DNA from: Octopus sinensis
Lineage: Eukaryota
Direction of reading: 5' to 3'
Assembly (NCBI RefSeq): GCF_006345805.1
Contig: NC_042999.1
Location: 23,684,001 to 23,748,000 of the forward strand
Length of the DNA: 64,000 nt
Shown here: positions 11,934-38,145 of the stretch, piece by piece
Layout of the letters: the number at the start of each line of letters is the position of its first letter
Numbering within the stretch: the stretch's first letter is position 1
The notes under the pieces: generated by a model
What the model was told of the DNA's origin: nothing
Databases searched by the model: none
The model's input: the letters and a program-made list of their open reading frames with translations, nothing else
Program-made: the position numbers and the translations under genes

Positions 11934-12009
<76 letters not shown>

Positions 12010-13366: not shown

Positions 13367-13455
13367 GTAAGATGCATATTTTGTAACATTGGTATTTTGA
13401 AACAAAATAGGTTCTTCTCCATCATTCTGTACAAGTAATATATCAATTATATCAT

Positions 13456-14455: not shown

Positions 14456-14599
14456 ATATATCTAATATATCAGGTGTTTCTGATAAGCAGCTAAGAAGTA
14501 TCAATAATGAATGTATTTGAATTTGCCTACAAAATTAGCGTAGTAATGATGTGACGTAGAAGGGCTATTAAAGCACCGAATAAAATATCTGTGTTTTGA

Positions 14600-14770
14600 T
14601 TCCAAATCGCATCGCTGACTTATATGATGGTATATGCATATTCTTGCCCATCTCAAGCAACCCTATCCGGCTAATTATATCTACACTTGTCAGAAGTTTT
14701 GATGGGAATGTCCCACCAGTATTCCTTATATTGATGTGTGTGAATGTCTTCAATAACAGGGGGATTCTCT
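14600..14770 (-). mobile_element. RLE-type (R4/Dong/NeSL-like) LINE fragment
   Basis: Minus-strand translation EYWWDIPIKTSDKCRYN*PD resembles the restriction-like endonuclease region. Confidence 0.5.
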
Positions 14771-14923
14771 ATATTTATTTCAAGTCAGTCTTTTTTCTTA
14801 TTGGCATTGTGTATTATTTTAGCAACAGCATCATGTTGCATAAGGAGGTAGTATCTTGGCAGCAAGGCCGCCGAGGGGAGCATCTTGCTTTGTTCGTCAA
14901 CCGTTTTGCATATATCTTTTCAG

Positions 14924-15160
14924 GCTTTGGAAAATTTATCCGTGTCCAGCAAGCATTACTTCAAATAAGTCCCTTCTACATTTACCTCGCTGCACACCCA
15001 AACAACTGCGCAAAGAAATGTCAGCAAATCAAGGAATGCTTAGCATTCAACTATGACAATAAAAATGATATATGTAGCCTGTTATCTGAAGATGCCTCTA
15101 CAAACAACACTTTGAAATCAGAAGATTGTGAACACACAGACTACTATCAATTGAAGAAAA
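14924..15160 (+). CDS. Gene A exon, PAN/Apple domain 1
   Basis: tttcag|..|gtatgt, 237 nt, phase 1-1; NCAKKCQQIKECLAFNYDNKNDICSLLSED...TDYYQLKK. Confidence 0.88.
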
Positions 15161-15188
15161 GTATGTAATATTAGGAGTACTGGTAGTA

Positions 15189-15755
15189 TTGGGTTGTCCG
15201 GAAAGTTCGTGCCGATTTTTAAAGGAAAGAAAAAGGTCAATAAATATTTGCCATTACATTTTTTAATCAACCAAATATGAACCATTTTGTTGCACAAAGC
15301 GTCTCCATCTTTCCTTTAACTTGAAAATACCCTCTTCCCAGAATTGAGGTGGTTTCATGGCAAAGAATTCATCAAAATATCTTTTTACGTCATCCAAGGA
15401 ATTGAAATTTTTACCAGTAAGACTATTCTGCAGAGAGCTGAATAAGTGAAAATCCGAAGGAGCAATATCTGGTGGTTATGGAGTGTGGGGTAACACATCC
15501 CAGCCGAGCTTCAGCAATCTTTGTCTGGTTCCCAAAGCATCAAGTGTCGAAAATGAACTTTCTTATCTTCCATTTTAAAAGGTTACAGAATTAACACAGG
15601 TTATAGGAACAAAACCCTTCTTCCGCGAAAAGATAGCTTAAACTATGCTCTAAATGGAGGTGTAGTCAAATCTTATTTTATGGACGCAACCATGATCTAA
15701 AATAAGTCGAAAGGTAAACTACTATAAATCGGCACGAACTTTCCGGACAACCCAA
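15189..15755 (-). mobile_element. Internally deleted mariner element
   Basis: Perfect 29-bp TIRs (ttgggttgtccggaaagttcgtgccgatt), TA on the left; transposase C-terminus PDIAPSDFHLF..LKERW. Confidence 0.9.
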
Positions 15756-15819
15756 AAATTAGATTTCCGTTTCCTCCATTCTTATTTCATTTCTCTCTCA
15801 CTCACTCTCTGTCTCTATG

Positions 15820-16003
<184 letters not shown>

Positions 16004-16028
16004 AATATATATATGATATTAGTTTCAG

Positions 16029-16241
16029 GTGCAAGGAATGTAATTAAAGGAGCGGCACTGAGCACCTGCGACGAAAAAAAATTGGTTAACGACAATTACT
16101 CAAAACCGGAATGTGAGAAGACTTGTTTGGCCGTGAAGTGTAGTGCACTCGATTATTCAGCTACTAAAAAGCAATGTCATATCTTCGAACATGATATAAA
16201 GCATCATGGTTTGTATGGAGACGAAGACACAGTATACGTTG
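16029..16241 (+). CDS. Gene A exon, PAN/Apple domain 2
   Basis: tttcag|..|gtaag, 213 nt, phase 1-1; [27 protein letters not shown]. Confidence 0.82.
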
Positions 16242-16933
16242 GTAAGTTTACTCTCGATATTATTGGATATTCGTGAAATCAAGTTCCACCGAGGCTGCAT
16301 TTGCCTTTCGGTGGCTTACAGAATATGTATCAGCTGTAATCATCTAGTCCCTCCCTCAACATTTCAGACATTTTACCTTTAGCAGAAAGGATGTTATTTG
16401 ACATTCGAAAGTGGCAAACCGGTATAATGTTTAGCAGCATTTTTTCTTCCTTACGTTCTGAGTTCAAATTCCACCGAGATCGACTTTACCTTTTATCCAT
16501 TCGGGGTCGATGAAATAACAACCAGTTGCGCACCGGCGTCGATGAAATAACAAATAGTTGAGTACTAAGGTTAATGTAATCGACTTGTCCCTTGTATCCC
16601 AAATTATAGGCCTTGTGCTCCAAGTAGAATGGATTATTATTGGTCAGCCGTATTTCTATTGTGAATTCTGAGACGGACTTTACACGCTGCACACAGTGAA
16701 GACAATTAAAAAAATCAAGTTAAATATTAATAGTTTTGTATAAATTAGTTAATCATATAACAATTGCTTTAATTATATAATAGTTGCATTGTTCTTAATC
16801 GCAATTCCCTCGACTGAGTGGACTTGTGATCGAAGGTGTTCTAACGATCACCACCTCCTCGTCGAGCCGAGCTAATCATCATAGTTTTTATCTTTCAAGG
16901 ATCTTTAGGAATAAAATGTAGATATCTGTCTGC

Positions 16934-16999
<66 letters not shown>

Positions 17000-17225
17000 C
17001 TATCTATCTATCTATCTATCTAATTTGATTCACATTGTTTATTTCTCAGCTTGCTTGTTTCCCTGTGTTTGAATTGAAGTAATTCTACTTGTTGCGATTT
17101 TAATAATTATACTTAGATCTACTAATTCATCGTTGAAGTAAATAAATACTGATTATGGAACAGAAGCAGTTCTAAAATATTTAACACCCGGGAAGAATCC
17201 CTATAAATGTATTGCGTTAAAAGTG

Positions 17226-17607
17226 TAGGCGCAATGGCCCAGTGGTTAGGGCAGCGGACTCGCGGTCGTAGGATCGCGGTTTCGATTCCCAGACCGGGCG
17301 TTGTGAGTGTTTATTGAGCGAAAACACCTAAAGCTCCACGAGTCTCCGGGAAGGGATGGTGGTGATCCCTGCTGTACTCTTTCATCACAACTTTCTCTCA
17401 CTCTTACTTCCTGTTTCTGTTGTACCTGTATTTCAAAGGGCCGGCCTTGTCACTCTCTGTGTCACGCTGAATATCCCCGAGAACTACGTTAAGGGTACAC
17501 GTGTCTGTGGAGTGCCCAGCCACTTACACGTTAATTTCACGAGCAGGCTGTTCCGTTGATTCGGACCAACCAGAACCCTCGTCGTCGTAACCGACGGAGT
17601 GCTTCCA
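17226..17607 (+). mobile_element. Third tRNA-SINE family (same head at 11370-11662 -, 12520-12893 -, 18277-18645 -, 33905-34275 +, 35510-35795 +)
   Basis: ggcgcaatggcccagtggttagggcagcggactcgcgg..ggtttcgattccc head with different 3' tails. Confidence 0.8.
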
Positions 17608-18109
17608 ACCAACAACATTGTCACATACTTGTGTCACTTCCGAAATGAGTTGAAATTGGCCAGTCTGAAGTATACAGAAACTTATAACTAATATACCGAT
17701 TTGCGATGACACCGTACAAGCAATAAAATTCAAATTGTGCAATAGAAGCAGGTCTAGCGTAAAATATTTATCTGTATAACACACTTAAATCTCTTCATAA
17801 AGGGATATTACCTGGAATACGTTATGTATATTATATAGAGGCGGCATGCTTAGCGGTATTTCGTCTGCCGTTACGTTCTGAGTTCAAATTCCGCCGAGGT
17901 CGACTTTGCCTTTCATCCTTTCGGGCTCGATAAATAAAGTACTAGTTTCGCACTGGGTCGATGTAATCGACTTAATCCCCTTTTTTTGTCTGTCCTTGTT
18001 TGTCCCCCTCTATGTTAAGCCCCTTGTGGGCAGTAAAGAAATATATATAGATTAATATTGATGTGTTTTAAAGATATCTAAAGTTTTTTCATTTTTCATT
18101 ATTTTGCAG

Positions 18110-18123
18110 GTTTTTCTGAATGA
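18110..18123 (+). CDS. Gene A terminal coding micro-exon (G-F-S-E-stop)
   Basis: polypyrimidine tract + ttgcag|GT TTT TCT GAA TGA, in frame with the phase-1 PAN2 donor; AATAAA 48 nt downstream; conserved in the inverted copy. Confidence 0.65.
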
Positions 18124-18170
18124 CCTATATCCTAAATTACGTCAAGTAAACCATTATATGTATAAGCACA

Positions 18171-18176
18171 AATAAA
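18171..18176 (+). terminator. Polyadenylation signal AATAAA, gene A
   Basis: AATAAA downstream of the TGA at 18121-18123. Confidence 0.55.
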
Positions 18177-19347
18177 GAGTCTAAATATCTATTTAAAAAA
18201 ATTCTTAGTCTTTCTTTAAATTCTTCTTTTTAAAAATTTTTCGTTGTTAAAATCTTCTTGCGGTTATTAGAAATTGCTGCTGCTGTTTGTTTGTTGGTTG
18301 AGCGAAGCAGGCTTCGCCCTTGGGAGAAGTCCGAAACGTGGTCCTTCGCTATTCGTAAGACCCCCAGAAGAGAAAGCAGGTCGACGCCCGACACCGAGAG
18401 CATCGACGGATGGATGAATGCGCGTCCAGGCTCAGCGGTTGCGTAGGAAGTCGGGGACAAGAAACAGGAAGAAAGAGTAAGCGAAAGTTGGAGCAAAAGA
18501 GTACAACAGGGGTTGCCACCACCCCTGCTGGATCCTCGTGGAGCTTTAGGTGTTTTCGCTCAATAAACACACACAACGCCCGCTCTGGGAATCGAAACCG
18601 CGATCCTCCGACCGTGAGCCCGCTGCCCTAACCACTGGGCCATTTTAGTCCATTCCCACTCTTTAGACTTTTGTAGATCTGATCACTGTAGCTCAGCGGA
18701 TTTAGAGAGCTGCGGTTATCATTAGGTTGTAGTTTTTATATAGGAATTGCCTTCTCTTAGGCGAATTGCCTTATAGGCTGGAGTGCTCCACCTGCTCTGG
18801 AGTTGCCAGAAGGGTGTCAAAGAGGATACTGAATTGCTTCGGGAACTCTGCTCCTTGATCTGTTAGCAAAGTTGACTCCCTAGTCTTTCCCTTTCCCAAA
18901 GCACTCATAAGACAGTGAGGCATTGTGCCTGAAGTTTTTCCGTGATATGCTAATTGCTTTATAGCTGGAATCATGATAGGTGCTACTATTCCGGCTTCGA
19001 ATAATAGTGGGGAACAATAGTGACTAGTAGGTGGTGTATGTATTGACTTATGTATATATATATATACAACGACCTCGAACCCACAAGAGTAAAAAAGAGA
19101 GACAGAGACAGGCAGAAACAAGGTAAATGCTCCTTGTATTTGAACACTATGCAAATATTCTTTTTACAAAACCTTTGTTTTTATTTTTCCAAAATTTAAT
19201 TGTTTTTCATACATACAGTTGAAAAAGTCTCAATGACTGAAACCGGTACTGAAATGTTTTTTTTTATTAAATTACTTTAGAATTTTCGCATTTTCTACCT
19301 TGACTTTTTTTCCCATAAATATCAACTCGTGTGTTCCTTTTCAACCT

Positions 19348-19421
<74 letters not shown>

Positions 19422-19987
19422 AAGAGAGAGAGATAGAGAGAGAGGAGAGAGAGAGAGATAATTATGAGTTAGAGGCTTTGCAACCGTCTAAGGGATAACT
19501 GTATCCGTAGGCACATCTGGTGTATTACCTCAAAATGTATAGGCCTTTGTATAAGGTTAACAGTAGTTGGTAATTTTAATGGTAAACTGTGGTTTAATAT
19601 ATTCAGATAAGAAAACAAATGGACCAACTATTAACAATTAGAAGTTGATCATTGGTATTAAATGGTCACAGTTTAATTATAGCTAAAATAAATGTACACA
19701 CACGAGCAACCTATAGAGGAAACAAAAATGTAAGTCTAAAGACTTAACGAACTTTTTTCCCTTTTTCTTTTTTCTTTTCCTTTTTCCTTTCTCCTTCTGT
19801 CAATATTCCTCTGACAAACTCCAAATCATTCTGACAATGTTTGTTATATAGAACGAGATAAATGCAAATTTACCTCAAAAATAACAAACTGAAACAGCTG
19901 TAAGTGTTATTTTAGCTATAATTAAACTATGACCATTTAATACAAATGCTCAACGTCTAATTGTTAATTGTTGTTCCATTTCTTTTC

Positions 19988-20019
<32 letters not shown>

Positions 20020-20020
20020 A

Positions 20021-20071
<51 letters not shown>

Positions 20072-20699
20072 TATCTATATCTATCTATCTATCTATTTAT
20101 CTATCTCTCTCTATATATATATATATGGAGGTCGAATTTGGCTTTTGATCCTTTCGGGGTCGATTAAATAAGTACCAGTTACGCACTGGGGTCGATGTAA
20201 TCGACTTAATCTGTTTGTCTGCCCTTGTTTGTCCCCTCTGTGTGTAGCCCTTTGTGGACAGTAAAGAAATAAGAATCGTTAGCACGCCGGGCGAAATGCT
20301 TAGCGCTATTTTGTATGTGCTTACGTTCTGAGTTCAAATTCCGCCGAGGTCGATTTTTCCTTTTGAGGTGGATAAAATAAGTACCAGTTGAGTAACGTTA
20401 CTCATGGATATGAGTATAACAGCTGCACACCTCTGCCAAGCCATGGCAATCCAATGTGCCAGAATACGATCATCAAACCAGTATGTTCTCAAGTTCAAAT
20501 TCACGTCCTCCACATCAGACCGTGGTTGTTGGAGTGAACATGCTGAGGCCTCCGTCCTTCGTATGGACTGAACATGGCCAAAGAAAAAAAACAGAAAGAA
20601 TATGATTTATCAGTGAAAGCTTAAGCATCCGATCGTCATTTTAGCAAGATCGATAGAACAAGAGAATCGATGACCCAACTCCCCTATCACTAAAAGGGT

Positions 20700-20962
20700 A
20701 AAGACCCCTTTCTGTCATAAATGACCATGGGATTGTACCTACAAAGTTACTCACCGAGGCACAAGTCCGGACAAGGTTTTTATGGAAGACTAACAGTCGC
20801 CCATGCATACCAGCCTCCTCCTCTCCACATTGCTACAGCTGAGTGAACTGGAGCAACATGAAATAAAGTGTCTTGCTCAAGAGCACAACACAGCCCTAGT
20901 CAGGAATCGAACTCACTACTTCATGATTGTGAGTCCGATGCTCTAACCATTGACCCATGCGC
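20700..20962 (-). mobile_element. tRNA-derived CORE/V-like SINE
   Basis: Minus strand: tggttagagcatcggactc..gttcgattcc..cttgagcaagacacttta. Confidence 0.6.
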
Positions 20963-21191
20963 TGCAACAATAAGCAATATATTATGGACAACTAAGGATT
21001 AAGTACTTACGAGCTGTTACGTGAAAAACAATACAAAATCTAGGTAAATATATAAAAACACGAAACAACAAATTATTTGTTGCGTGATTATAAATCGATA
21101 TTTATCGGAAATAAACAATCTGCCGGAATGCAAAACACAAGTTTTATATAAATATATATATATTTGCGCACGCATGTGTGTTTGTGCGTGC

Positions 21192-21224
<33 letters not shown>

Positions 21225-21925
21225 TGTGAGTGTGTAAATAGGGAACAGCTTTTCTTTTGCGCATGTAATATTCAAAAACACAACTATGTTCATGTTTGAT
21301 GTTTTTTGTGTATATATATGTATATATGTTCATGTTTGATGTTTTTTTTATGGTTTTTGTTTGTGTACATATGTCGTAAATCTTTATGAGTTCTTTATGT
21401 TTGGTCTGGAACAACAGCGATTGTTAATCCTATAGTTTGATACTCCGAGTCTTTTTTATCGTCTTAATCTTAAAAGAAACAATTGTAATGGCGCGTTGTC
21501 CGTATGTTCTGCATAAAGTTGCAAAACGTCTTGGCAATAATTTTATAACTGATAAAATTACTAACTCCGGATTTAAAATTATACACCGTTAAATCCAGAT
21601 AGATTTCAAGATATGATTTTTTTAAACACTTTTTTTATTTTTTTTCATTATATATTTTAAGTGTTAAGCATTTGTGTGCTTAATTTATTGAGTATTTCGC
21701 TATTTTTATTCTTTTTTACTTTTACTCTTTTATTTGTTTCAGTCACTTGACTGCGGCCATGCTGGAGCACCAGCTTTAGTCGAGCAAATCGACCCCAGGA
21801 CTTATTCTTTGTAAGCCTAGTACTTATTCTATCAGTGTCTCTTGCCGAACCGCTAAGTTACGGGGACGTAAACACACCAGAATCAGTTGTCAAGTGAGGT
21901 TGGGGGGACAAACACAGACACATAA

Positions 21926-22009
<84 letters not shown>

Positions 22010-22559
22010 GACGGGCTTCTTTCAGTTTCCGTCTACCAAATCTACTCACAAGGCTTTGGTCGGCTCGAGGCTATAGTAGAAGACACTTGCTCAATGTGCC
22101 ACGCAGTCGGACTAACCCGGAACTATGTGGTTGGTAAGCAAGCTACTTACCAAATAGTCACTCCTGCGCTCTTATTAGTAAATTTGCTGCAATTATTCTT
22201 ATTTATTGCGGAATTCGATATAAAAATTTATGTGCTGTGAACTAACAGACAACTTTATAATGAGTTGAAATGGTTCCTTGTTGTAAATTTTTGATCTAGC
22301 AGCAGGAAGCATCGCCCTTGTTTGTCTGACGTAGGCATATGACTTATGTAAATTACATCTTTGGTCCCCTTGAAGTCCTCACACCGGCGAACAAAAAGAA
22401 AGCTGAGAGACATAACCATGTAATAAGATGCAGAGGTCTTGCAAGGACAATTCTGCATGGAAACGAAGAGTTAGAAGAAAGGAAGACAAAGGTAAAAATG
22501 AAAGGAAAACTTCAAGGAATGGATAGACGAATCATGCACGGCAGATGCATGGGCTACAT

Positions 22560-22640
22560 AATGCAAAATCTTTACTTTTCAAAAATTCCCATTCTAAAGG
22601 GTCGAAACAAACCCGAGCAACGCCGGGCGATACTGCTAGT
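22560..22640 (+). mobile_element. Helitron 3' terminus
   Basis: cccg..cggg hairpin followed by CTAG|T at 22636-22640. Confidence 0.55.
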
Positions 22641-23949
22641 TTTACATATATTTACAATTCAAAATCGTCTCCTTTGCTTTCACTATAGCCCTTAACTATT
22701 TATACTTGCCATTTTCACTTTGCAGTGAAACGTACACCTAACAAGAAAAATTAGAAACATAAATATCTCCAATTCTGTGTGAACATTTACATTTTGTCGT
22801 CTCTCATGACTATAAGAATGTGTAAAATTGCCTTTTAAATTATCTTTTATTGTAACAACACAATTAAATGCACGATAAAAAGTTATGGAATTAAGCACCT
22901 ACTACTATATACATACAACTGAATTCAGAAATTTGAAAAATATATACATAACATTGAACTCAGAAAGTTATTTTAAAAAAAAATCATCGTGGAGAGAAAG
23001 AAAAGAGAAAGGAAAAAAAAATGTAAACAGGTTTGACCTTTTACTGACCATTAACGTCTTTTGTCTCCACCATCTGCCCTGTCTATTTATAGACTCAAAG
23101 AACATGAATTCTTTAACCAACCATTCTCCCACACAATGGAGTGTTGATGGTGGCTGTGGCTACACATAAAACAATGTCATTGATGATGATGATGGTGATG
23201 GTGGTGAAGATGATAGTAATAACAATAATAACTGACAGATCCCGTCTTTTTCCCTTTCTTTTCGTTTCCTTTTCTGTATTTTATTCTCATTATTTCGAAC
23301 TAATACATACAGAGTGAGCCTTGAAGAAAGGAAGAGGAGGAAAAAGAGAAGAAAAAAAAAATAAATAATAAAATAAAATGTTCGGAGATAAAACTATCAA
23401 CAAAAAATACAGACGAATATAGATCAGCTAGTCTTAAAAAGCTGCGCTATGAGCAATGCTTAAAACCCTCAGCCCTCCCTCCAACGTATAATTTACTTTA
23501 AAAAGAAATACTTTAAAAGGGAAAAACGTGAGAAAAAAAAAAAAAGAAGAAATTAATAATCTAAATTAACGATAGTCAAAAACATGTGCCTTCTCGCACA
23601 TAAACACATTATTCACACATATACAAACATGCGCAGATGCAATTATTGAAGTACTAAATGGCACGTCAAATGATATTTAATCGAGTGGAACATTTTGCAT
23701 GCATATCAATATTCTAAAGTTGGACATACTATCCCTTATCCTAAAGCTGCTTCAGACAATTAGGAAGGGTTCCCGACTCGTTGCACCGTCTGCTTTCAAT
23801 CTTGGATTGTGATTCGGCTCAGCCCAAACTCTCTCAGATGTTGTCTGCTGTTGCCTACTCCTACAAGGATTGCACCTGTTTTTTGTTCCTGATTTAACTC
23901 CGATTTGTCCTAGAGCCCATAGAAGATTGTTTTTAGTCAACCATCCATC

Positions 23950-25409
23950 ATGTCAGTTCCCTACGGATCGAAACTGAGATCTGCAAGAAGGGCTTCTCAT
24001 CAAGATGATGGTCCTACCAATAGTCAGCTCAACGAGCAGTTGCTGTTGTTCAAACAAGAGGTCGAGCACCTAAAGTCTGTTGTTGCTCTCTTACTGAATA
24101 AACAGTCTCCTGTTGACGCAGAGTCACCCTTGATTTCTTCCCTGGAGACGTCCAAACCGAAGGGAACAAAATCGAAGCGGCCAAAGAAGGCGAAAGAACC
24201 GGCGGTCGTTTCTGCACATGATCGTTCCTGTGCGGATTCTTCCCCATCTGCCTTTTCGGTCCCGGAGGTTCCCCAACCGAATTTGAGGAGCGTAGACTCA
24301 AACCCACCTGAAGACCGTTGTTCTCCCCAAAAGAAGAAACGTCGTCAAAACTCCCATGGGGCGGATTTAGCTATGAAACCTGACCACGATAAACAGTCTC
24401 CTGTTGACGCAGAGTCACCCTTGATTTCTTCCCTGGAGACGTCCAAACCGAAGGGAACAAAATCGAAGCGGCCAAAGAAGGCGAAGGAACCGGCGGTCGT
24501 TTCTGCACATGATCGTTCCTGTGCGGATTCTTCCTCATCTGCCTTTTCGGTCCCGGAGGTTCCCCAACCTAATTTGAGGAGCGTAGACTCAAACCCTCCT
24601 GAAGACCGTTGTTCTCCCCCAAAGAAGAAACGTAGTCAAAATTCCAGAGGGGCAGATTTGGCTATGAAACCTGATCACGATAAAATCCGTTTGGATTCTC
24701 CCTCACCTGTCCTTCCCATTAATGCCATTGCTCAACCAATTCTGAACGATCTCGATGTGAGTTCATCTGGGGAGTGGCGCTCCCCCAAACCGAAGAAGAG
24801 GCAGTGCAGTTCCAAACCAGGCGGGAAAATTATGACCACTAAACCCATTCCGATCGACCCCACAGGCCGACATAAGTCCGATGGCTATGAAACCACCCTT
24901 TCGAAATCCTCCAATGAAGAATCGAATACCACAGCTCATAGTAGAGAACATTTTGCCCACTCAAGATCAGCAATAATTTACGGTAAAGCTGAATCCACCC
25001 GTGATACAGGCATAAATCGCCTAAAAGATGACATTAATTTTGTTTCCATTTTAGTTGGAAAATTGTTCTCTGTGAACGAAAATGTCAGTGTCCATAAGGT
25101 CGCTCGGCTAGGAAGATTCCAAGCGAAACCAACCTCAGATACTAGACCACGCCCAATAAGGGTAATCTTCTCTTCCGATCGGGAGGCTTCAGTCTTTCTG
25201 AACAGAGCTCAGACGCATGCCTGGGATGACCCCAATATGGTTTTCGCGAGGAATACTCACTAAGAGAGAGAATTCGCCGGAGAAACCTAATATCCGAACT
25301 AAAGATGAGGAAACAAATGGGAGAGAAGGGTTTACGAATCCAAGATGGACAGATAATCAAGTCCTACCTCTGGTCCCATGCTGTAGTGCTGACAGGGAAA
25401 GTGATGTGA
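23950..25409 (+). CDS. LINE ORF1 with internal 291-bp duplication and one frameshift near 25260
   Basis: 437 aa open to the TAA at 25261; a -1 shift continues LRERIRRRNLISELKMRKQMGEKGLRIQDGQII to TGA at 25407-25409; CR1-type RLG..RPRP motif. Confidence 0.8.
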
Positions 25410-28294
25410 GGGCAAATCGAAGTGAAGTTGATACCCCCGTCAACGATGCTATCTCTGATACCCCTTATTCTGCTTGTTCCCCAACTCCCGCCCCTCAGAC
25501 TTCACAGCTCAGCATCGTCTACACCAACTCGTGCTCCTTATTCCCAAAGTTCAGTGAACTATTTACACTGGCCATACGTGACTCCCCTGATGTGATAGCT
25601 ATCACCGAGACTTGGCTGACTCCAGCAGTAAAGGACTCAGAAATCTACCTGTAGGGCTACGTCCTTTTCAGATGTGACAGAGGAAAAAGGCGAGGTGGAG
25701 GTCTTGCTGTGTATGTTAAGTCTGAGCACAAACCGTCCAGCGGTATTCTACCCACTAATGCTCAGCCTACAACAAAATTCGATGCCGTCTATTGCAAGCT
25801 GAGCCTATCTGAGTTTTGCCTGCCCGTGTTGGCTGTCTACAGGCCGCCTCTTGCCGACCCCCAGGACGATGCTCATTTACTCGAAGCGATAAGATTCGTT
25901 TCAGCTTCGCATGACTGTTTGGTACTAGGCGACTTCAACGCTCCCACGATCGATTGGCCCGCATCAATTTGTACAACATCTTCCCGGTTCGGCCAGGCCC
26001 TTCTTGACGTGGCTGAAGATTGTTTTCTATCGCAACATGTTGAATATCCGACAAGGCATCGGTCTGGGCAGCAGCCATCTATGCTAGATCTGGTATTCTC
26101 CCGCTATCCAAGATCAGTGTCAGACGTATCTGTGTGCGCCCCTCTTGCCAAGAGTGATCATGCGGTCCTGAAGTTCGTCATGCACACAACTTTTTCTGCG
26201 CCCACGACTACTTCGCTGCCACGTAGAGTCTTCTCTGCAATTAATCTTGAAATTCTAACCGAGGCTTCCGCGCTTCTGGACTGGCGATCCCTGATGACGT
26301 TGTCCTCAGTTGACGAACTATGGTCATCCCTCAAAGCATATGTAATCTGTTTGACTGACCAGGCAGTTCCCGTTGGGCTTCCCAAGAGGAAGAAACACAA
26401 GCCCTGGGTGACGAAGAGGGTTAAACGAGAACGTCGACTCAGAGATATTGCTTGGGCTGAATTAAAAAATCTGGATTCGACTGCAGCTTTTGAGGTGTAC
26501 AAAACACAACGAGACCGAGCCGTGAAAATCGAAAAGAAAGAACGCTTCAGTTATGAATACAAAATCGCGGCAAATGCCAGTAGCAATCCAAAAACCTTCT
26601 TTGCCCATGTCCAGCGGAATTCCCGCTTGAACAACCAGATTGCAACGTTGGTAGACTCAACAGGCGTATCGATTGAGGACCCTTATCAACAGAGTCAATT
26701 ATTTGCCGAGGCTTTTTCAACTATTTTCAAACAAGATGATGGTCGTGAACCCCCTCCATTTGATAGATCGGTACCTCCAATGCTTCGATTGGTCATCACA
26801 CGGGACGAAGTCAAACGAGTTATTCAAGGCCTCGATGTCAACAAGGGTCACGGCCCTGACGGCATACACCCACGGGTTATCAAAGCGTTGGCTCCGGTCA
26901 TCTGCGAGCCCTTAACGCGACTATTCAATATGTCATTGGCGACGGGTGTTATACCTGCAGACTGGAGAACAGCGATAATCTGCCCAATTTTCAAGAAAGG
27001 GAGCCGCGAAGATCCGCTTAACTACCGACCGGTTTCCCTTACATCAATAATCAGCAAGATGTTCGAAATCATCCTTAAGAAAAGTATGATGCTCCACCTC
27101 CTAAACACAGCCTCTATCTCTGATTCCCAACACGGCTTCGTGCCGAAGAGATCATGCTTGACCAACTTACTAGTAATGGAAGAATTGGTGACGCGCATCC
27201 TCGATGATAGTGATGCTGTTGACATCGTTTTACTGGACTTTGCCAAAGCTTTTGACTCGGTAAACCACCGCCTATTACTTGTCAAGCTTCAAGCATATAG
27301 TTTCCATCCGGATATTGTACGATGGGTTGGTGCCTTCCTCTCAGATCGCTCCTTCCAAGTCCAAGTTAATGGTTCGCGGTCCGACGTCTCCAGTGCGAGC
27401 AGTGGCGTGCCTCAAGGTTCAGTGCTTGGGCCCTTGTTGTTCTTAGTCTTCATAAATGACTTGCCCGACGACCTCACGCAACACACCCTTCTATTTGCCG
27501 ACGATATCAAACTGGTCGCTCCTCGCGGTAATATAGAGGATCTTCGTCGATGCCTCCACCAAATTTGGAAGTGGTCTAACGATTGGGACCTGTGTCTGAA
27601 CGTGTCAAAGTGCTGTCATCTGCCTGTCGGCTCTACTCCTGCAACTCAACTTGATTTCGAGCCGGGTCGTCTGCTGCTGGAGAGGACCGATCAGGTAAAG
27701 GACCTAGGTATCTTGGTGGATTCCTCCTTTTCGCCTTCGGCCCAGTGCGTTCATGCTGCCAACAAAGCACGCGGAATTCTGTTCTTGATTCGACGGTCAT
27801 TCGGAATGCTCACAGCAGCCACATTCCTACCGCTCTATGTCACGCTGGTGAGACCCATATTGGAGTATGGGATTCAAGCCTCTTCTCCTTATCTCCTCAA
27901 AGACATACAGCATCTCGAAAGAGTCCAGAAGCTGGCTACCCGCATGGTTCATGGTCTCAAAAATTTGTCCTACGAAGAAAGGCTGAGGACGCTCGACCTT
28001 TATTCTCTTGAAAAACGCCGCCGCCGTAGTGATCTCATTCTCGCCCACAACATCATAAGCGGAAAGTGTAACCTCTCGAAAGAGCTGTTCTTCACTCCTG
28101 CTCCAGAGCGTCGGCTGCGGGGTCATTCCGAAAAGCTCTACCTGCGACGATTTCATCTCAATCGAAGGAGAGGAGCTTTCTCCGTCCGGGTTGCGGATCC
28201 GTGGAACAAGCTGCCAGACGAGATGGTGAAGATGCCGACGACCGCTTTGTTCAAAGCCTCCCTGGACCTCAAGTGGCCTGAACTCTTTACATGA
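25410..28294 (+). CDS. LINE ORF2 (AP endonuclease + reverse transcriptase) with a single in-frame TAG at 25652-25654; start approximate
   Basis: APE motifs YTN, AITETW, GDFN, LDL, SDH; RT motifs YRPVSLTS, QHGF, DFAKAFD, GVPQGSVLGP, LFADD; CR1-type C-terminus RGHSEKL..FSVRV..WNKLP. Confidence 0.93.
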
Positions 28295-29009
28295 ACACCA
28301 CCCTGTACTTAACTCCATGTCCCCCTACATGGCCTTGCTATTTGCTTTTGAGCCAAATTAACTAACTAACTAACTAACTAACAGTCCTTTATCCCAGCCA
28401 TTTTCAATGCTACAATTTGTTCACATGTTGTATGAGCCACCATATTTAATTAAGGGCGAACAATAAAACAAAAGAACGTTAACAAACGCTATGCAACATC
28501 TGCAACTATGTTTACAAATAAGACTGCTTTGATTTATGTTTGAATAATGAATAATTAATTGTTTACATAATGGGTAAATGTATATGACACACCCAGTGTA
28601 TTCTATTCTCAGTGGGTCAATCTTTATGAGATCTTTGCTCTCTTCTGCCAGCAGATCACCGAATGGGGATCGATAAAATAAGACTCTGCCATCACACCGG
28701 GGTTCGAATTGATAAATAATATAATATGCTCTGCATGATATTTGAGATTGAAAAAAGAACATTGAGTGCAAAGAAATTTGAACAAGTTGGATACACAAGT
28801 AGCAAGTACAGAAGAACTGAAACCAACAATGATAGACAGGTGGAAAGAGACAATGGTTGGAATGATGTTAAAATTGAATATTCATAAGGCGGCGCGCTGG
28901 CAGAAACGTTAGCACGCCGGGCGAGATGCTTATCGGTATTTAGTCTGCCGTTACGTTCTGAGTTCAAATTCCGCCGATGTTGACTTTGCCTTTCATCCTT
29001 TCGGGCATT

Positions 29010-30830
29010 TCTTCTTCTTCTTGTTGTGTTGGCAGCCAGAAGATCTATTATTAAATTTGATGATAAGTTGTGGGCCCGTAAAGACACACCAGATAGTTTC
29101 GATATACCAATGGGAAGTTCTGATTCAGCACAGATAGCTGATTTGGTCTGTATATATATTCTTTTTGAAATGGCTGAAGAGTTCCCTAGCATTTATGGAG
29201 GTCTATATCGTGATGATTGTTTACTTAACCTCCAAAATGTTTCCAACCAAAAGGTACAAAAAGTTAAGAATAGTTTAGTTAATTTTCTCACTAGAATGGG
29301 TTAAAAATCGTTTTTGATGACGATATGACGAAGGCCAACTTTTTAGATATTACGCTTAATTTACACAGTGATTCTTACTTCCCATATCGTAAACCGTTGA
29401 CCAATCTAAAGTACATTAGCAAATTTAGTAATCATCCTGGAGCAATTACTTAGAACTTAGTTAAGAATATTTCATTTAGATTATCTAAATTATCTGCTAA
29501 TGTTGATATGTTCAATAATAACGCTGAATTCTATAACTCTGCCTTAATTAAAGCAGGTTATACAGAGAAAAGTTTCTACATTGATTCTGCTCAGTCTAAT
29601 TGTAAATTCAATAATGTAGATAAGATTTCTAGTCGTAAAAGAATTATTGATAACAAACATAACTTACGCACCGATACAAAGCGAATGAAGGCAGATAACC
29701 CTTATTTAATCCCCTATTATCGATCTAAAAGTAAATATAACACCTTCAAAAGTAATTACGCTATGAATACTAGTAAAAATATTTGGTTAATAATTCCTTA
29801 CGGGAGACAAATTAAATCTAATCTCCCACTGCTGTTTCGTCAAGCTATTGCTAGGAATTTTCCAAACAATTCTAGATATTACTCTATTATCAATTCACAT
29901 ATGGTTAGGATAGGTTTTTCAAACACAAAAATATCTTGCAAATTATCTCTTCACATAATAACAAGCTGTTAAATATTAATACATTTACTAATACTAACAT
30001 TAATTTAGCTAATACTATCCAACCCTCTAGAAATATTAATAACAAGGTTATTGTATCTGAAATCAATTCCAATAGAATTAAAATTTATGTCAAGTAACTC
30101 TAAGATTAAAAATTCTATATACCAGTGTATAATCAGTACTCGTAATAAAGTACAATTTTACATTGGAAGCACATCGTTAGAGTTATCTAAAAGAATTTCT
30201 ATCCATTACTCAACATTTAGGGATAGAAATAAACGTAATAGTACCGGTCTCAGCAAATTGATTTGGGATTTAAAAGACCACAATGAAAAATTTCATTTAG
30301 AATAGTTGATTCTCTCAATTTCGATACCATATGACAAAGGCAAGGAATTCTGTCTTCTCTGCAATTCTGAGTTATTTTTCATTATTTTTTCTAAAAATTA
30401 CTCTAGTAAACACGGTTATAGGGCAACCATACAGATGTAAGCATTGGCAAAAACATACATTTAGTGAATATAAGTAGCCTCTATCATTATATATAATTGA
30501 AACTTTAATTTCCTTTATATTTAACATTCACTATTAATATCCCTACTCTTTCTGTTAGCTACTTATGACGTTATATCATATAACGTTTTTTTTTAAACAA
30601 TATTAATAGCGTTCTGTCTATCGCTATACAAATCCATCATTTTTTGCTAAAATGTCTTATTGACGAGTTCCGCTTTTTTCACTTTCCTGAGAAGATTGCA
30701 TTGTTTATACCATTTATTCTTTGAATAGTATCAGTGGAATTTTCGAAACATGTGTCGAAAATAAAAATATTTGATTACACCTGCGTTAAACTCCATTTAT
30801 TTATTCATTATTATTCAAAATATTCCACGT
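29010..30830 (+). mobile_element. Decayed Penelope-like element: RT core, C-terminal GIY-YIG endonuclease, 3' pLTR
   Basis: FDIPMGSSDSAQIADLV, GLYRDD, NFLDITLNL; IYQC..FYIGST..KRISIH..CLLC; several stops and frameshifts; hammerhead-like motif at 30683-30760. Confidence 0.85.
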
Positions 30831-32593
30831 AAACACGAAGTTTCTACCTTTATAAACAAGGAGTTACAACATCTTTACTTGTGAGATTTTTGCTACCCTG
30901 GTAACTATTTATTTATTTTTTCCGTGTTAATTGTTAACAAGGTAAAATACAACATCTTTTTTATATATATAATATATGTATATATATGTGTATGTATGTT
31001 AAGGTGAAAAGGAACACACGAGTTGATATATATGGGAAAAAAGTCAAAGTAGAACATTCGAAAATCCTAAAGTAATTTTATAAAAAACATTTCAGTACCG
31101 GTTCCAGTCATTGAGACTTTTTCAACTGTAAGTATGGAAAACAATTAAATTTTGGAAAAATTAAAAGAAAAGTTTTTTAAATGAATATTTGCATAGTATT
31201 CAAATACAAGGGGCATTTTCCTTGTTTCTGCCTGTCTCTGTCTCTCTTGTTTACTATTGTGGTTTCGAAAGAAAAAAGCAACAAAAATGGATCAATATTT
31301 CGGTACAATTGTTTCGTACGAAGACCACCTTTATTAAGGCTGCAAATATTGCAGCAAAAACACGTGACCCGTACTCATCAGCCGAAAAAACATCTGAGTT
31401 CTCAAAACATCTAAGGGGTTGAGGCTACACTCATGAAACATTCGGGATAGTTCTATAAAAATCAGATTTAGATAATAAACGAACTTCCAAAGTTCTTTAA
31501 TGTTGCACTATCAAATAACAGGCTTTAAAAAAGTATTAAAAAAACCTCTTAGTTTCACAGAAATTGAAAATGTAAATCCATCCATAATAATGAAGTATGT
31601 TTGAATTCTGGAGATATGAGGAGAGATTTCATAATCACAGACGATGTATTTATCCATAATTAGTTCATAATAAAGTGGGTTTCCTGATGTATGATTGTAA
31701 GCTGGTTGCATTTCTGATCATTTCTCAAAACTGCTATGTTAGAATTTGTTGAATGAAATTTAGTGGAGCGTATAGACAATCACTCACAAAGGGTATAAAG
31801 GGTTAACTGAGAAGAAATGGTGTTGTAAATATCCACTCACGCAGAATAGTTTATCTCAGTGGAGACAAGCTGACTGGATCAGAATTTGTAAGAATCTAAG
31901 AGTTTTAAAAAAAGGAAAGCTAATCTTGACCAGTATTCCGTTGTTAATTGCTATATAAAGAGGACAAGGGAAGTTAAAGGCGGGTCAAAAGGTTATCACT
32001 ATAGGAAAAAGTATTAGCAGATTTCAGTGCAACACTAGAAAGGAGGTCATTCAATTAATTTCTTTATTTATTAATGTTACTACTTATACAGTGGCAGACT
32101 TTGGGACTGCATTTAGGGGTCAAAAGAAAGAATTGGGAGTATTGTTTTTCATAATGAAAAATCGTTATATTATTTCTATGGGATTAGCTTTAATTTACTT
32201 ATAGTATATAAAAGAATTACGAAGTTTTATTAACTTATTTGCTTTAAGTTGGTTTCCCTAAATTAGAAAAAATTTAGATGAAATTAATTTAAATTATCTA
32301 TATGGTCTATTAGAATGAAAGTTTTTTAGCAGCTGATTTATTTCTTTATATTCCAAATCTGGTACATTTAGAGAGAAAATAACCATAGCTTATGAACTTG
32401 CAGCTGTCTATTTAAAATAAAAATATAAGAGTATTGCTATATTATTATAATAAGCAAGAAAGACAAATCACCAAATGGTTTTTATATACGGTTGTCATTT
32501 AAATTTATAATACCATATAGATTTCTGGTGCATCTAAGTTAAGTATCTCATTCATGTGAATTCAACAGAACTCACTTGAATCTTAATTGCTTT

Positions 32594-32637
<44 letters not shown>

Positions 32638-33149
32638 GTAAGTCAATACATACACCACCTACGATTCACTATTGTTCCCCACTATTATTCGAAGCCGGAA
32701 TAGTAGCACCTATTCCCAGCTATAAAACGATAAGCATATCACGGATAAATTTCAGGCACAAAGCTTCACTGTCTTATGAGTGCTTTGGGAAAGGGAAAGA
32801 CTAGGGAGTCAGCTTTGCTAACAGATCAAGGAGTAGAGTCTCCGAAGCAGTTCAGTATCCTCTTTGACACCCTTCCGGCAATTCCAGGGCAGGTGGAGCA
32901 CTCCAGCCTATAAGGCAATTCACCTAAGAGAAGGCAGTTCCTATATAAAATCTACAACCTAATGATAACCGCAGCTCTCTAAATCCACTGAGCTGCAGTG
33001 ATCAGATCTACAAAAGTCTAAATAGTGGGAAAGGACTGATTCCCACTTTAAAACTACTAAGTGCAGGAATGAAGAAATGATGAGCAGTACTGAAGATCGG
33101 TTTACTTAGCTACATGAAGGCGTGTTGCTCTTACTCAATCTCCGGACAC

Positions 33150-33270
33150 GAAAGAGCCACCATCATCAAATATGCCTCTCCCGTCTTCTCTCCAGGGAGT
33201 AGAGTCTTAGCTGTTTCAACCTTTCCCAGTAGCTGAGCTGTTGCAAAGAGACATTCTTTTTTGTGAATCT
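33150..33270 (-). mobile_element. CR1/L2 RT C-terminal fragment
   Basis: LSYWERLKQLRLYSLERRRER. Confidence 0.65.
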
Positions 33271-34378
33271 TGCAGTTTGTTTGATATTTCATTTTTAAAC
33301 AAGTTTTACCGATTTTTCTAGGGTATCTTCAGTCTCTCTTAAACTGTATTTCCTTACTATTGACAAGCAAAACATTGTTGAAACCGGTATGGTATTATAA
33401 TACATTTGCTTAAAAAATTAAAAACTACAATTCGTTTTCAACGCAGATACATTTCCAACCCTACATTTGTTCCTGTGTGGGAATATATCTATTTTCTTCA
33501 AATATTTTTATGTATGTATGTATATATGTATGTATATATTTGTATGTGAATGAGTGTGTGCGTGCATGTATGTTTGTATGTTTATGTTTATATATACACA
33601 CGTATCTGTCTATATCATTGTATATAACTTACACATAATTATGTCTATGTATATCTACACATGCAAGAATACAAGACACTTTTATTATCATGGAGTTTTT
33701 AGTTAAATTATACCAAGAAATTTACAGAGCTCAGAGTGAGGCCGGTTGGATGATTGTCGTAGATATATTTAATAAGAACATTCAAATAGTTTTATAACAA
33801 AGTTAAGAATAAGGTATGGCAAACAAATATTTTCAAATGCGTCAATTAATTATTAGAAACAATTTAACTGCAAAAGCAAGACATCAACAGCAGTAGCAAG
33901 TGGAGGAGCAATGGCACAATGGTTAGGGCAGCGGACTCGAGGTCGGAGGATCGCGGTTTCGATTCCCAGAGCGGGCGTTGTGTGTGTTTATTGAGCGAAA
34001 ACACCTAAAGCTCCACGAGGCTCCAGCAGGGCGTGGTGGCGACCCCTGTTGTACTCTTTCGCCCCAACTTTCTCTCACTCTTTCTTCCTGTTTCTTGTCC
34101 CCGACTTCCTACGCAACCGCTGAGCCTGGACGCGCATTCATCCATCCGTCGATGCTCTCGGTGTCGGGGGTTGACCTGCTTTCTCTTCTGCGGGTCTTAC
34201 GAATAGCAAAGGATTACGTTTCGGACTTCTCCCAAGGACGAAGACCGCTTCGCTCAACAAACAAACAAACAGCAGCAGCAATTTCTAATAACCACAACAA
34301 GATTTTAAAGACGAAACATATTTAAAAGAAGAATTTAAAGAAAGACTAAGAATTCTTTTTTAATAGATATTTAGACTC

Positions 34379-34384
34379 TTTATT
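34379..34384 (-). terminator. Polyadenylation signal AATAAA, inverted copy
   Basis: tttatt on the + strand, same spacing from the stop codon as in gene A. Confidence 0.45.
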
Positions 34385-34431
34385 TGTGCTTGTACATATA
34401 ATGGTTTACTTGACGTAATTTAGGATATAGG

Positions 34432-34445
34432 TCATTCAGAAAAAC
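34432..34445 (-). CDS. Inverted copy of the GFSE* terminal exon; candidate terminal exon of gene B
   Basis: tgcag|GT TTT TCT GAA TGA intact on the minus strand, AATAAA at 34384-34379; phase 1 matches the donor at 37962. Confidence 0.45.
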
Positions 34446-34608
34446 CTGCAAAGTATTGAAAAATGAAAAAACTTTAGAAATCTTTAAAACATATCAATAT
34501 TTATCTATATAATATACAATGTCTTCAATTCAAATACAGGGAAGCAAGCAAGCGGAGAACTAAACAAAGTGAAGCAAATTTGATAGATAGATAGATAGAT
34601 AGATAGAG

Positions 34609-34662
<54 letters not shown>

Positions 34663-35364
34663 CCAAACACAGACAGATAACTACATTTTACTCTTAAAGA
34701 ACCTTAAAAGATAAGAAATATAATGGTTAGCTCGGCTCTACGAGGAGGTGGTGATCGTTAGAACACCTTCGATCACAAGTCCACTCAGTCGAGTGAATTG
34801 CGATTAAGAAGAACAATGCAACTGTTAAATAATTAATGCAATTGTTATATGAATAACTAATTTATTCACAAACTAATAATATCTAACGTGATTTTTTTAA
34901 TTGTCTTCAATGTGTGCAGCGTGTAAAGTCCGTCTCAGAATTCACAATAGAAATACGGCTCCCTAATAATAATCCATTCTACTAGAAGCACAAGGCCTGT
35001 AATTTGGGATATACGGAACTAGTCGATTACATCAACCCTTGTACTCAACTATTTGTTATTTCATCGACCCCGGTGCGCAACTGGTTGTTATTTCATCGAC
35101 CCCGAATGGATAAAAGGTAAAGTCGATCTCGGCGGAATTTGAACTCAGAACGTAAGGAAGAAAAAATGCTGCTAAACATTATACCAGTTTGCCACTTCCG
35201 AATGTCAAATAACATCCTTTCTGCTAAAGGTAAAATGTCTGAAACGTTGAGGGAGGGACTAGATGATTACAGCTGATGCATATTCTGTAAACCACCGAAA
35301 GGCAAATGCAGCCTCGGTGGAACTTGATTTCATGAATGTCCAATAATATCGAGAGTAAACTTAC

Positions 35365-35442
35365 CAACGTATACTGTGTCTTCGTCACCATACAAACCAT
35401 GATGCTTTATTGCATGTTCGAAGATATGACATTGCTATTTAG
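35365..35442 (-). pseudogene. Truncated, stop-containing copy of the PAN2 exon 3' part
   Basis: Reverse complement matches about 16165-16241; AAG changed to TAG in frame; 5' part and acceptor absent; donor retained. Confidence 0.8.
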
Positions 35443-35795
35443 GAGCCTCTCCTGATGGTTACCGCACGCACACACACATATGTGTGTGTGTGTGTGTGTG
35501 CAATCACATGTCCTCGTCATTAGAGCAGGAGACTCGCGGTCTAGGGATCGAAGATTCGAATCTCCGAACGGGCGATGTGTGTGTTTATGAAGGAAACTCA
35601 TCAGTTCCACGCGGCCCCTGCAGTAGATAATGGCGAACTACAACCGACTCTTTCAACTCAACTTTCTCTCAGTTTTTCTTCTGGCATCTAGCAGCTCACC
35701 TGCGACGGACCGATGTCCCTGCCGGATGGGGAACCTACTCCAATGAAACCGGGGAACCGGCCCTTATGAGCCAGGCATGGATCGAGAAGGAACGA

Positions 35796-35877
<82 letters not shown>

Positions 35878-35878
<1 letters not shown>

Positions 35879-36033
35879 GGAGTGGTTGGCGTTAGGAAGG
35901 GCATCCAGCCGTAGAAACACTGCCAGATTTGACTGGGCCTGATGAAGCCTTCTGGCTTCACAGACCCCAGTAGAACCGTCCAACCATGCTAGCATGGAAA
36001 ACGGACGCTAAATGATGATGATGATGATGATGA

Positions 36034-36037
<4 letters not shown>
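35878..36037 (+). mobile_element. RTE-type 3' UTR/SINE tail ending in (GAT)n
   Basis: ggttggcgttaggaagggcatccagccgtagaaac..ggacgctaaatgatgatg. Confidence 0.6.
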
Positions 36038-36080
<43 letters not shown>

Positions 36081-36210
36081 ATATACACTTAGAAAAGAAT
36101 GCGTGGCGTTCGATCATATATTAATATAAATGATATAAAATATATGCATATTTACATACATATATGTATATACCTAATTATTCTTCTCTTTTTCACTGTG
36201 CTCTCTTTCC

Positions 36211-36257
<47 letters not shown>

Positions 36258-36789
36258 CCTCCTTGACTCTCTCGTTGCTGACACATGACGAAAGGGAATC
36301 TATCTTTCTTTCCATTTCTCTCCTAAAGTCAGAACTGTCTCCTCTCAAAGCTCGTCCTCCTAGCGTTCATAATAATTTTTCTATCATCTTGGCTCAACAG
36401 CCTTCACCGTTTGTTTTTACTGTCTTGTTTTCACTGTCCTGTTCTTGTTACCACTTTCACCCTCCGCAAAAAATCCCAAAATTTATTTGATTTACTTTTC
36501 GGGAAGTACTGTTACAACGAAGTCGCGTATTGTCCTTGCCTTCGCGGAGCAGTGTAGATGAAACAGGGACAACTAATGAAGGGGAATATTCTTTATGTTG
36601 CATATCTCGTTTCTCTGTATTTTTCGATGTTCGAAAAATAGTACGTTTTCTAAATTTTCGTTTTTATGTTTTCGTTTCTTATTGTGTTTAACGTTTTTTT
36701 GATGTCCATAAGCAGGTATGCATGTATATATACATATATATGTAGGTATGTATTTATATGTATGTATATATGCATATATTATACATATT

Positions 36790-36871
<82 letters not shown>

Positions 36872-37961
36872 ATATATGTGTATATATATATATACATACA
36901 TGTATAAATATACATTTATATATATGCATATATATAATTTTTGTATATGCTTATATCTATATACGTATATATACATACATACATATGTATGTATGTATAT
37001 ATATATATACGAGAAAAAAGCAACAAGAATGGATTAGTTTTTTTGTACAATTGTTTCATACAAAGACAGGGTTTATTAAAAGCTGCAAATATTGCAGCAA
37101 ATACAAGTGTCCCGTACTCATCAGCTAAAACACATATGAGTTCTCCAAACATCTTAGTGGGTGAGGCTACACTCATGAAGTATCGGAGATAATTTTATAA
37201 AAAGCAAATTCAGGTTGTAAGCGGACTTCCAAAGTTCTTTAATGATGATGCACAGTCTTATCACAGTTTTTAAAAAAGCTTATTAGCTTCACAGAGAAGA
37301 TGAATCAATCCATAATGTAGGTGCAAATTTCCAGAGATATGAGGAGATATTTCATACTCACAGACGAGGAATCTATCCATGATTAATCCACAATGAGGTG
37401 GGTATAATTTCATGCTGTATGATAAGATACTTGTCACACTACTGTTCCCTGCACAAAACTGCTATGTTAGAATTTCTAAAAGCTGAAGGAATTTTGTGGA
37501 GCAAAGAAAAAAAAAGAAAAGAAAGAAAGAAAAAGAAAGAAGAAGAGGAGGAAAAAACTGTTGAGCACTTAGGCTGACGTAATCCACTTTCCTTCCACAA
37601 AATTTGTGGCGATCTGCCAAAATTTGTAACCATTATTATAAAAATTAAGCCAGAGAGCTGGTTCAATCGTTTCTTCACTGGAAGCAATGCTTAGCAGAAT
37701 TTCGTCCATAGTGGCATATTGGATCCAGATTCCGCGCAGATCTACTTTGCTTTTCATTCTTATCGAATCGATAAAACAAGTACTACTTGAAGACTGGTCT
37801 CCATTTTGTCAACTTACCATGTCACTTCAAATTATTGGGTTTCGACAAAAATTTCAAACGTGTATTACAATTATACTTGAAAACAACGAAGAACAAATTA
37901 TTTGTCTAAAATTACCAGTTCAGTGAAAATAGATTAATGATAATTGTAAAATTTTACTCAC

Positions 37962-38145
37962 CAGCGTGAACACACTTTTCGTCCTGAAGAATGAAATTTT
38001 CCTTACAAACACAGGCATATTTCCCTCTTTCAATTCCGCAGTGGCTATTTTCACCACAAGGAGTGATATTTTCTGTTACGACTTCGTTTCCAGGTTTACA
38101 TATTTTCTTTGTTTTACAATCTGCTGATATAATTTCCTCATTAAC
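37962..38145 (-). CDS. Gene B exon, TILa/EGF-like (block I, last in array)
   Basis: ctacag|..|gtgagt, 184 nt; VNEEIISADCKTKKICKPG...CGENSHCGIERGKYACVCKENFILQDEKCVHA. Confidence 0.9.

Follow-up and report, generated by a model that had tools for sequence, protein, structure and literature searches.

An inverted partial duplication of a gene's 3' end beside a convergent VWD-C8-TIL-TILa paralogue in Octopus sinensis

Introduction

Animal genomes commonly contain partial and chimeric gene duplicates. In C. elegans and D. melanogaster, such structurally heterogeneous duplicates are reported to account for 56–86% of the total, and the Drosophila gene Hun is a partial duplicate that recruited flanking sequence (Katju 2012, PMC3449122). 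Here we describe an event of this known type in a 64,000-nt stretch of the Octopus sinensis genome (chromosome CM016861.1:23,684,001–23,748,000, assembly GCA_006345805.1; hereafter the window), in which one gene, A, has an extra, inverted copy of its 3' end downstream of the last exon of a second gene, B. The two genes are paralogues arranged tail to tail, so that the inverted copy lies on the strand of gene B.

The copied piece contains a splice acceptor, a stop codon and a poly(A) signal, the three elements of which gene-trap and poly(A)-trap cassettes consist. A first-pass annotation of the window had proposed that gene B obtained its gene end from gene A, either by capture of the 3' end or by conversion between the convergent paralogues. 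We examined the extent and divergence of the two arms, the conservation of gene A, a sister locus elsewhere in the O. sinensis assembly and the structure of gene B, and we weigh below whether the copied terminal exon is a neutral relic or is used by B.

Results

Extent, content and divergence of the inverted repeat

Arm blocks were delimited by an inverted-repeat scan and a BLAST dot-plot, and identity and Kimura two-parameter (K2P) distance were obtained by global alignment; in the scan, the dot-plot and the alignment alike, the inverted match between the 3' part of gene A and the B side that had been reported earlier stands far above chance. Its outer ends, at 16160 and 35446, agree with the 16165 and 35442 given before, and the arms extend further inward than had been implied, reaching microsatellites at 19363 and 30987. 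The left (source) arm occupies 16160–19363 of the forward strand, a span of ~3.2 kb, and the right (derived) arm 35446–30987 of the reverse strand, in sense orientation relative to gene B, with ~11.6 kb between them. Four colinear, inverted blocks (16160–17079 with 35446–34523, 18041–18644 with 34515–33910, 18647–19066 with 33037–32623, and 19075–19363 with 31268–30987) comprise 2218 aligned nt at 93.4% identity (K2P 0.069). The arms differ by 146 substitutions (76 transitions and 70 transversions) and 13 indel events, an indel-to-substitution ratio of 0.09, and this divergence of ~6.6% is evenly spread, with 2–15 substitutions per 100 nt and a longest identical run of 92 nt, compared to ~70 nt expected by chance.

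On the source side, gene A occupies window positions 1–18176 of the forward strand with its 3' part (its 5' end lies beyond the window), running through EGF exons, VWD, C8, TIL and TILa (TILa exon, 13183–13370) into two PAN exons (PAN1, 14923–15156; PAN2, 16029–16241, 213 nt, ending ...GTT G|gtaagt). Its terminal exon has 14 coding nucleotides (18110–18123; cag|GT TTT TCT GAA TGA), which encode only ..G-F-S-E-stop, and the poly(A) signal AATAAA follows at 18171–18176. The left arm starts 82 nt before the end of the PAN2 exon, continues across the last intron and the GFSE* mini-exon to AATAAA, and takes in a further 1.2 kb of 3' flank.

On the B side, the copied sequence begins abruptly at 35446, 131 nt into the 213-nt PAN2 exon. 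The truncated PAN2 remnant (35365–35446, reverse strand) lacks an acceptor, retains an intact donor, G|gtaagt (35365|35364), and carries an in-frame TAG at 35437–35435 where A has AAG. A tblastn search of 35447–38000 recovered neither PAN1 nor the 5' half of PAN2, even at E=50, and the copy is without all exons upstream of PAN2, as is characteristic of a partial gene duplicate. The copied terminal exon (34379–34445, reverse strand) is intact on direct reading, with the acceptor ttgcag|GT (34446|34445), GFSE, a TGA stop at 34434–34432, the 3' untranslated region (UTR) and AATAAA at 34384–34379; between acceptor and AATAAA it differs from gene A by one substitution. The truncated PAN2, the AAG-to-TAG change, the missing PAN1 exon and the intact acceptor, GFSE* and AATAAA had all been described in the first-pass annotation, as had a short interspersed nuclear element (SINE) at a matching position in both arms, and our measurements bear out each of these descriptions. 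Two SINE-like elements are in fact common to both arms (16426–16548 with 35180–35058, and 18274–18644 with 34281–33899).

Both arms also have sequence of their own. The left arm contains a private stretch of 961 nt (17080–18040), with two SINE-like elements, in A's last intron, which the copy is without, and the right arm carries private insertions at 33038–33909 and 31269–32622. Both breakpoints adjoin microsatellites, and the outer end of the right arm meets a (CA)n/(TG)n tract together with a SINE fragment. Part of one right-arm insertion (31270–31747) recurs as a direct repeat with 76.6% identity at 37012–37475, between B's last exon and the copy, and this pair probably belongs to an unclassified repeat family. 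The spacer between the arms houses a long interspersed nuclear element (LINE), a non-LTR (long terminal repeat) retrotransposon at 23950–28294 of the forward strand, with two open reading frames (ORFs), ORF1 of 437 aa and ORF2 of 861 aa. ORF2, which encodes an endonuclease and a reverse transcriptase, is uninterrupted, and ORF1 has an internal 291-nt tandem duplication (24098–24388 and 24394–24684).

Gene A is the source of the copied sequence

To establish which arm is ancestral, we compared gene A with O. bimaculoides A0A0L8GYH4, for which there is no called-gene record, and with Argonauta hians GAB1606482.1 (1583 aa). Pfam matches of gene A lie above the curated cut-off for VWD (75 bits), TIL (27.5 bits) and PAN_1 (44 bits, in two stretches), and its C8 domain is visible by alignment only; the A-type architecture is VWA/EGF repeats-VWD-C8-TIL-TILa-PAN-PAN. 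By tblastn, gene A is colinear with the Argonauta protein and has zero frameshifts. The Argonauta gene tail consists of a PAN2 exon, a 2.3-kb intron, tag|GT AAC AAG TGA and AATAAA, giving a protein that ends ..IFVGNK, while the O. bimaculoides C-terminus reads ..DEDTIYVGFSE. The full PAN1-PAN2-mini-exon end is present in both species, with a terminal exon of 2–3 codons. Since these orthologues end alike, gene A is an octopod-conserved gene for a predicted secreted protein, and the left arm is its ancestral 3' end. The left arm is moreover continuous with an intact gene A and the right arm is cut mid-exon, indicating that the copying went from the 3' end of A towards B.

Three loci were used for comparison, from O. 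vulgaris (OX597816.1; L002), O. bimaculoides (CM046603.1; L004) and an unplaced O. sinensis scaffold (VCDQ01000533.1:25900–79637, reversed; L005). An element of ~690 nt in an intron of gene A (window 4561–5246) recurs in all three with 84–91% identity (L002 8306–8992, L005 7688–8371, L004 33347–33921); it sits just upstream of B-type genes in O. vulgaris and in L005, occurs also in the O. bimaculoides cluster, and could either belong to a repeat family or be sequence specific to, and shared within, the cluster. L004 further contains two convergent VWD/TIL genes whose facing ends carry diverged PAN2-like exons at 29767–30003 (+) and 36408–36181 (−), 26–32% identical to A's, so a tail-to-tail arrangement with PAN ends seems, from these exons, to be a recurring feature of the gene cluster. 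Colinearity with L004 is lost at an assembly gap ~250 nt past the TILa exon and L002 stops within the B array, which precludes dating the duplication by presence or absence.

A sister locus indicates a single, fairly old duplication

When the NCBI model for the last unit of B was looked up exactly, a further two B-type proteins of O. sinensis emerged, both on unplaced scaffolds. On one of these, at L005 43541–48623, a single-unit B-type gene (XP_036355134.1; signal peptide (SP)-WSC-like-EGFn-VWA-VWD-C8-TIL-TILa) is followed by the same ~2-kb junction region, an identical breakpoint (..GGAGAG|GCTCCTAAA..) and the A-derived fragment, up to window position 33391. The L005 fragment is 94–96% identical to the window's right arm and 93–94% to the left arm. 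The inverted duplication was a single event that preceded the separation of the two B-linked copies. A three-way alignment of 1514 sites assigns 63 substitutions to the branch of A and the ancestor, 30 to the window copy and 52 to L005. L005, ~5–6% diverged from the window copy, could represent either a paralogue at a separate locus or a haplotype of very high divergence, and the remaining 26 kb of scaffold VCDQ01000533.1 may hold a copy of gene A. The PAN2 remnant on the scaffold still has AAG, and the TAG is therefore a late change, private to the window copy. Likewise, window ~22.5–29 kb, the stretch with the LINE, has no counterpart in L005, so the LINE insertion is probably young. Identity between O. 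sinensis and O. bimaculoides at this locus is 85–88%, and at about half that distance the duplication would be fairly old. On these divergences the copy would be expected in O. vulgaris but not in O. bimaculoides.

The recurrence of the same junction on an independent unplaced scaffold also bears on whether the repeat was created by the assembly, as a misjoined or folded-back haplotype in PacBio-based sequence. The B array probably contains 1-bp indel errors, and the locus is rich in repeats, both of which would fit such an origin, but arms that differ by 6.6% in substitutions at a low indel ratio, with three private insertions between them, do not, and we consider an artefact scarcely credible.

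The pattern of divergence speaks in turn to gene conversion, in which A's 3' end would recently have overwritten that of an old convergent paralogue B, each gene originally having a PAN/terminal-exon end. A and B are indeed paralogues lying tail to tail, and inverted repeats a few kilobases apart can undergo gene conversion. However, no older homology continues past the arms, where only SINEs and microsatellites match and the B side has no diverged PAN1, PAN2 5' half or intron; the boundary is abrupt, mid-exon and beside a microsatellite; divergence is uniform and the 92-nt longest identical run is no long tract; and in O. bimaculoides and O. vulgaris B-type units are followed by further units rather than by PAN exons. 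Of the earlier capture-or-conversion proposal, the copying of A's 3' end to B's side and the compatibility of phase and geometry are upheld, and conversion, which we regard as very improbable, is not. We conclude that the structure is a genuine, single and old inverted partial duplication of gene A's tail.

With 3.2-kb arms that are 93% complementary and ~11.6 kb apart on one potential transcript, the repeat might alternatively, or in addition to any of the other readings, be regulatory: RNA reading through from A would fold back on A's 3' end and yield double-stranded RNA for RNA interference or for A-to-I editing, which is abundant in octopus. In Drosophila, inverted gene fragments are known to have given rise to hairpin RNA loci (PMC10317233). 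Such a role would require read-through of more than 12 kb past A's intact poly(A) signal, and we think it very improbable.

Gene B is a tandem array that is probably functional

Gene B consists of ~2.9 tandem units of 8.1 kb, each VWD-C8-TIL-TILa (37560–61278, reverse strand), and its signal-peptide exon lies beyond 64000, outside the window. Full-length B-type models have the architecture given above for XP_036355134.1. The units differ from one another by 2.1–2.5% in substitutions, with 5.8% for the last, partial unit, and a B unit matches Pfam above the curated cut-off for VWD (109 bits), C8 (45 bits) and TIL (30 bits). The coding domains of A and B share 30–55% protein identity, in keeping with the strong divergence noted earlier.

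Each B unit in the assembly is frameshifted, and the gene is represented at NCBI by three truncated models named 'zonadhesin-like'. Each frameshift is an indel of 1 bp, in many cases within a short homopolymer, for example at ~41782 and ~41687 in VWD exon 1 and at 54877 in a C8 exon; VWD exon 1 of the last unit has two 1-bp deletions and 0 substitutions in 300 nt. B units show 0.2–0.3 indel events per substitution, compared to 0.09 in the arms, and in O. vulgaris (L002) the exons of four full units read through, save for one frameshift in a C8 exon. The homopolymer indels, the high indel ratio and the mostly intact O. vulgaris exons together indicate that most of the frameshifts are probably assembly errors and that B is probably functional. 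We considered B as a pseudogene and rejected this as unproven, given 1-bp indels in substitution-free exons and L002 exons mostly without frameshifts.

In the O. vulgaris B-type gene (L002 31854–45809 and 52536–88641), EGF exons recur with a period of ~1.26 kb (12 hits at even spacing) and the VWD-C8-TIL-TILa units number four or more; the array, which ends at OX597816.1:25,353,857, runs on into a further 2245-aa model beyond L002. It is much larger than the three-unit O. sinensis chromosome array, which points to a copy-number difference or a collapse. Upstream of the B array in the window, a SINE- and microsatellite-rich region contains a near-perfect palindrome (62400–62674) with 136-nt arms, 99% complementary, and a 3-nt spacer. 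Rfam and tRNA scans of the window returned no matches.

Whether gene B uses the copied terminal exon

Gene B's last TILa exon (37962–38145, reverse strand) has the donor GCT G|gtgagtaa and ends in phase 1, as reported in the first-pass annotation; joined from 37962 to 34445 it would read ..CVHAGFSE*, and read-through of the donor gives ..CVHAGE*. The copy begins 2.5 kb downstream of this exon on the same strand. Between array and copy lies a 2.1-kb junction region (35447–37559, reverse strand) with microsatellites and SINE fragments, in which no exon is recognisable, and with AATAAA/ATTAAA hexamers at 37243, 37077, 36794 and 36487.

This geometry allows functional capture of the 3' end, in which B's last TILa donor would be spliced to the A-derived terminal exon as in a natural poly(A) trap, giving proteins that end ..CVHAGFSE with A's 3' UTR, B having lost or never had its ancestral downstream exons. 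The phase-1 donor (GCT G|gtgagt, 37962) and the phase-1 acceptor (ttgcag|GT, 34445) are in frame, stop and AATAAA are intact, and the would-be intron, with both ends on the same strand, is 3.5 kb long. In O. bimaculoides, a TILa donor of the orthologous type is spliced on to a VWA exon (XP_052822700.1, ..CVHT|VCNKPIDL..), and these downstream VWA-type exons have no counterpart in the window or in L005, so that B is here without a native 3' end. We regard capture as a possibility that deserves to be entertained, short of being probable.

As to whether the fragment is simply a relic, several observations weigh against it. No other terminal exon is recognisable in 37962–35447, and a bona fide one 3.5 kb away is a plausible partner. 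B's last donor is a strong consensus site (G|GTGAGT), and splicing employs it both within the array and in O. bimaculoides. Poly(A) sites tend to be suppressed when a strong 5' splice site without a partner lies close by. The acceptor, GFSE*, 3' UTR and AATAAA are identical over ~100 nt in the two B-linked copies, which are 5.9% apart overall, with 0 differences from the acceptor to ~18 nt past AATAAA, a non-significant hint of constraint. Finally, the NCBI models have no 3' UTR and are uninformative on where real B transcripts end: in the three B-type models with fetched loci, the annotated gene extends no further than the stop codon, and the models consequently reflect no transcript evidence on the 3' end either way.

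Other observations count against use of the exon. The models XP_036357535.1 (284 aa, window 40613–37954), XP_036355134.1 and XP_036354931.1 all end by donor read-through, the first in ..CVHAGE* and the two scaffold models in ..CVHTGE*, as does the O. vulgaris model. The exact 286-aa chimeric protein ending ..CVHAGFSE is absent from a collection of 15 billion proteins. In the exon-concatenate protein searches, one of which was dominated by EGF proteins, all matches were shorter than ~1.75 times the query length, and if this is a cut-off, a missing hit is uninformative for long A or B proteins. Constraint on the terminal exon is not significant: in a preset module from 20 nt before the acceptor to 30 nt past AATAAA, 3 of 119 sites differ between the two B-linked copies, compared to 75 of 1276 elsewhere (one-sided p ~0.08), and in the three-way alignment 40% of windows of the same size match or exceed its conservation, a comparison of low power. 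Four AATAAA/ATTAAA hexamers precede the copy. Phase compatibility, moreover, is a family-wide property and by itself weak evidence, as all junctions that we read are phase 1 (the A TILa end, the PAN1 start, both ends of PAN2, the terminal exon start and the start of B VWD exon 1).

Weighing both sides, a role as B's terminal exon is plausible from the sequence, and we put it forward tentatively. Equally tentative is the wider scenario, in which B would be a 3'-truncated duplicate of a larger ancestral gene that was rescued by its neighbour's inverted tail, the chimeric module then itself being duplicated to the chromosome and to VCDQ01000533.1. On balance, we lean towards a partial duplication that was dead on arrival as a copy of A and has most likely persisted as a neutral gene relic, one that also constitutes a ready-made terminal exon B could use. 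The gain of a TAG in the PAN2 remnant of one copy only is a sign of neutrality.

Discussion

A single event placed an inverted copy of ~3.2 kb from gene A's 3' end a few kilobases downstream of A, where it lies on the strand of the convergent paralogue B, 2.5 kb past the last B exon. Afterwards the arms diverged evenly to ~6.6%, each gaining insertions, and a LINE entered the spacer; the module of B plus fragment is now present at two places in the O. sinensis assembly.

If B uses the captured exon, the locus would be a clean and datable case of a gene without a 3' end gaining its neighbour's terminator and 3' UTR. Donor, recipient and sister copy would all still be readable, with the parents adjacent, and the gene end would have arisen through a natural poly(A) trap, within a cluster of secreted, adhesion-type cephalopod genes that evolves fast. 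It is no less likely that B does not use the exon, in which case this is an ordinary dead gene fragment, of use mainly as a marker for dating rearrangements of the cluster and as a caution to annotators. Probable assembly errors of 1 bp break the B-type models of this assembly, and the stop at which these models end is an unverified read-through.

VWD, C8 and TIL domains are found in A as well as in B, as they are in mollusc zonadhesin-like and other VWD-C8-TIL secreted proteins, which NCBI names zonadhesin-like or mua-3-like; these zonadhesin-like names, however, come from automatic annotation and imply no orthology to vertebrate zonadhesin. Like engineered poly(A)-trap cassettes, the copied module lies downstream of a strong donor without a partner and shares with them all three elements and their order, but it is natural and was not selected for trapping. 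It resembles partial and chimeric duplicates (PMC3449122) in that only part of the parent was copied and the fragment came to lie beside the truncated end of another gene, making a chimeric transcript structurally possible. It differs from them in that an inverted 3' end lies a few kilobases from its source and offers just three codons, a UTR and a poly(A) site to what would be a putative chimera.

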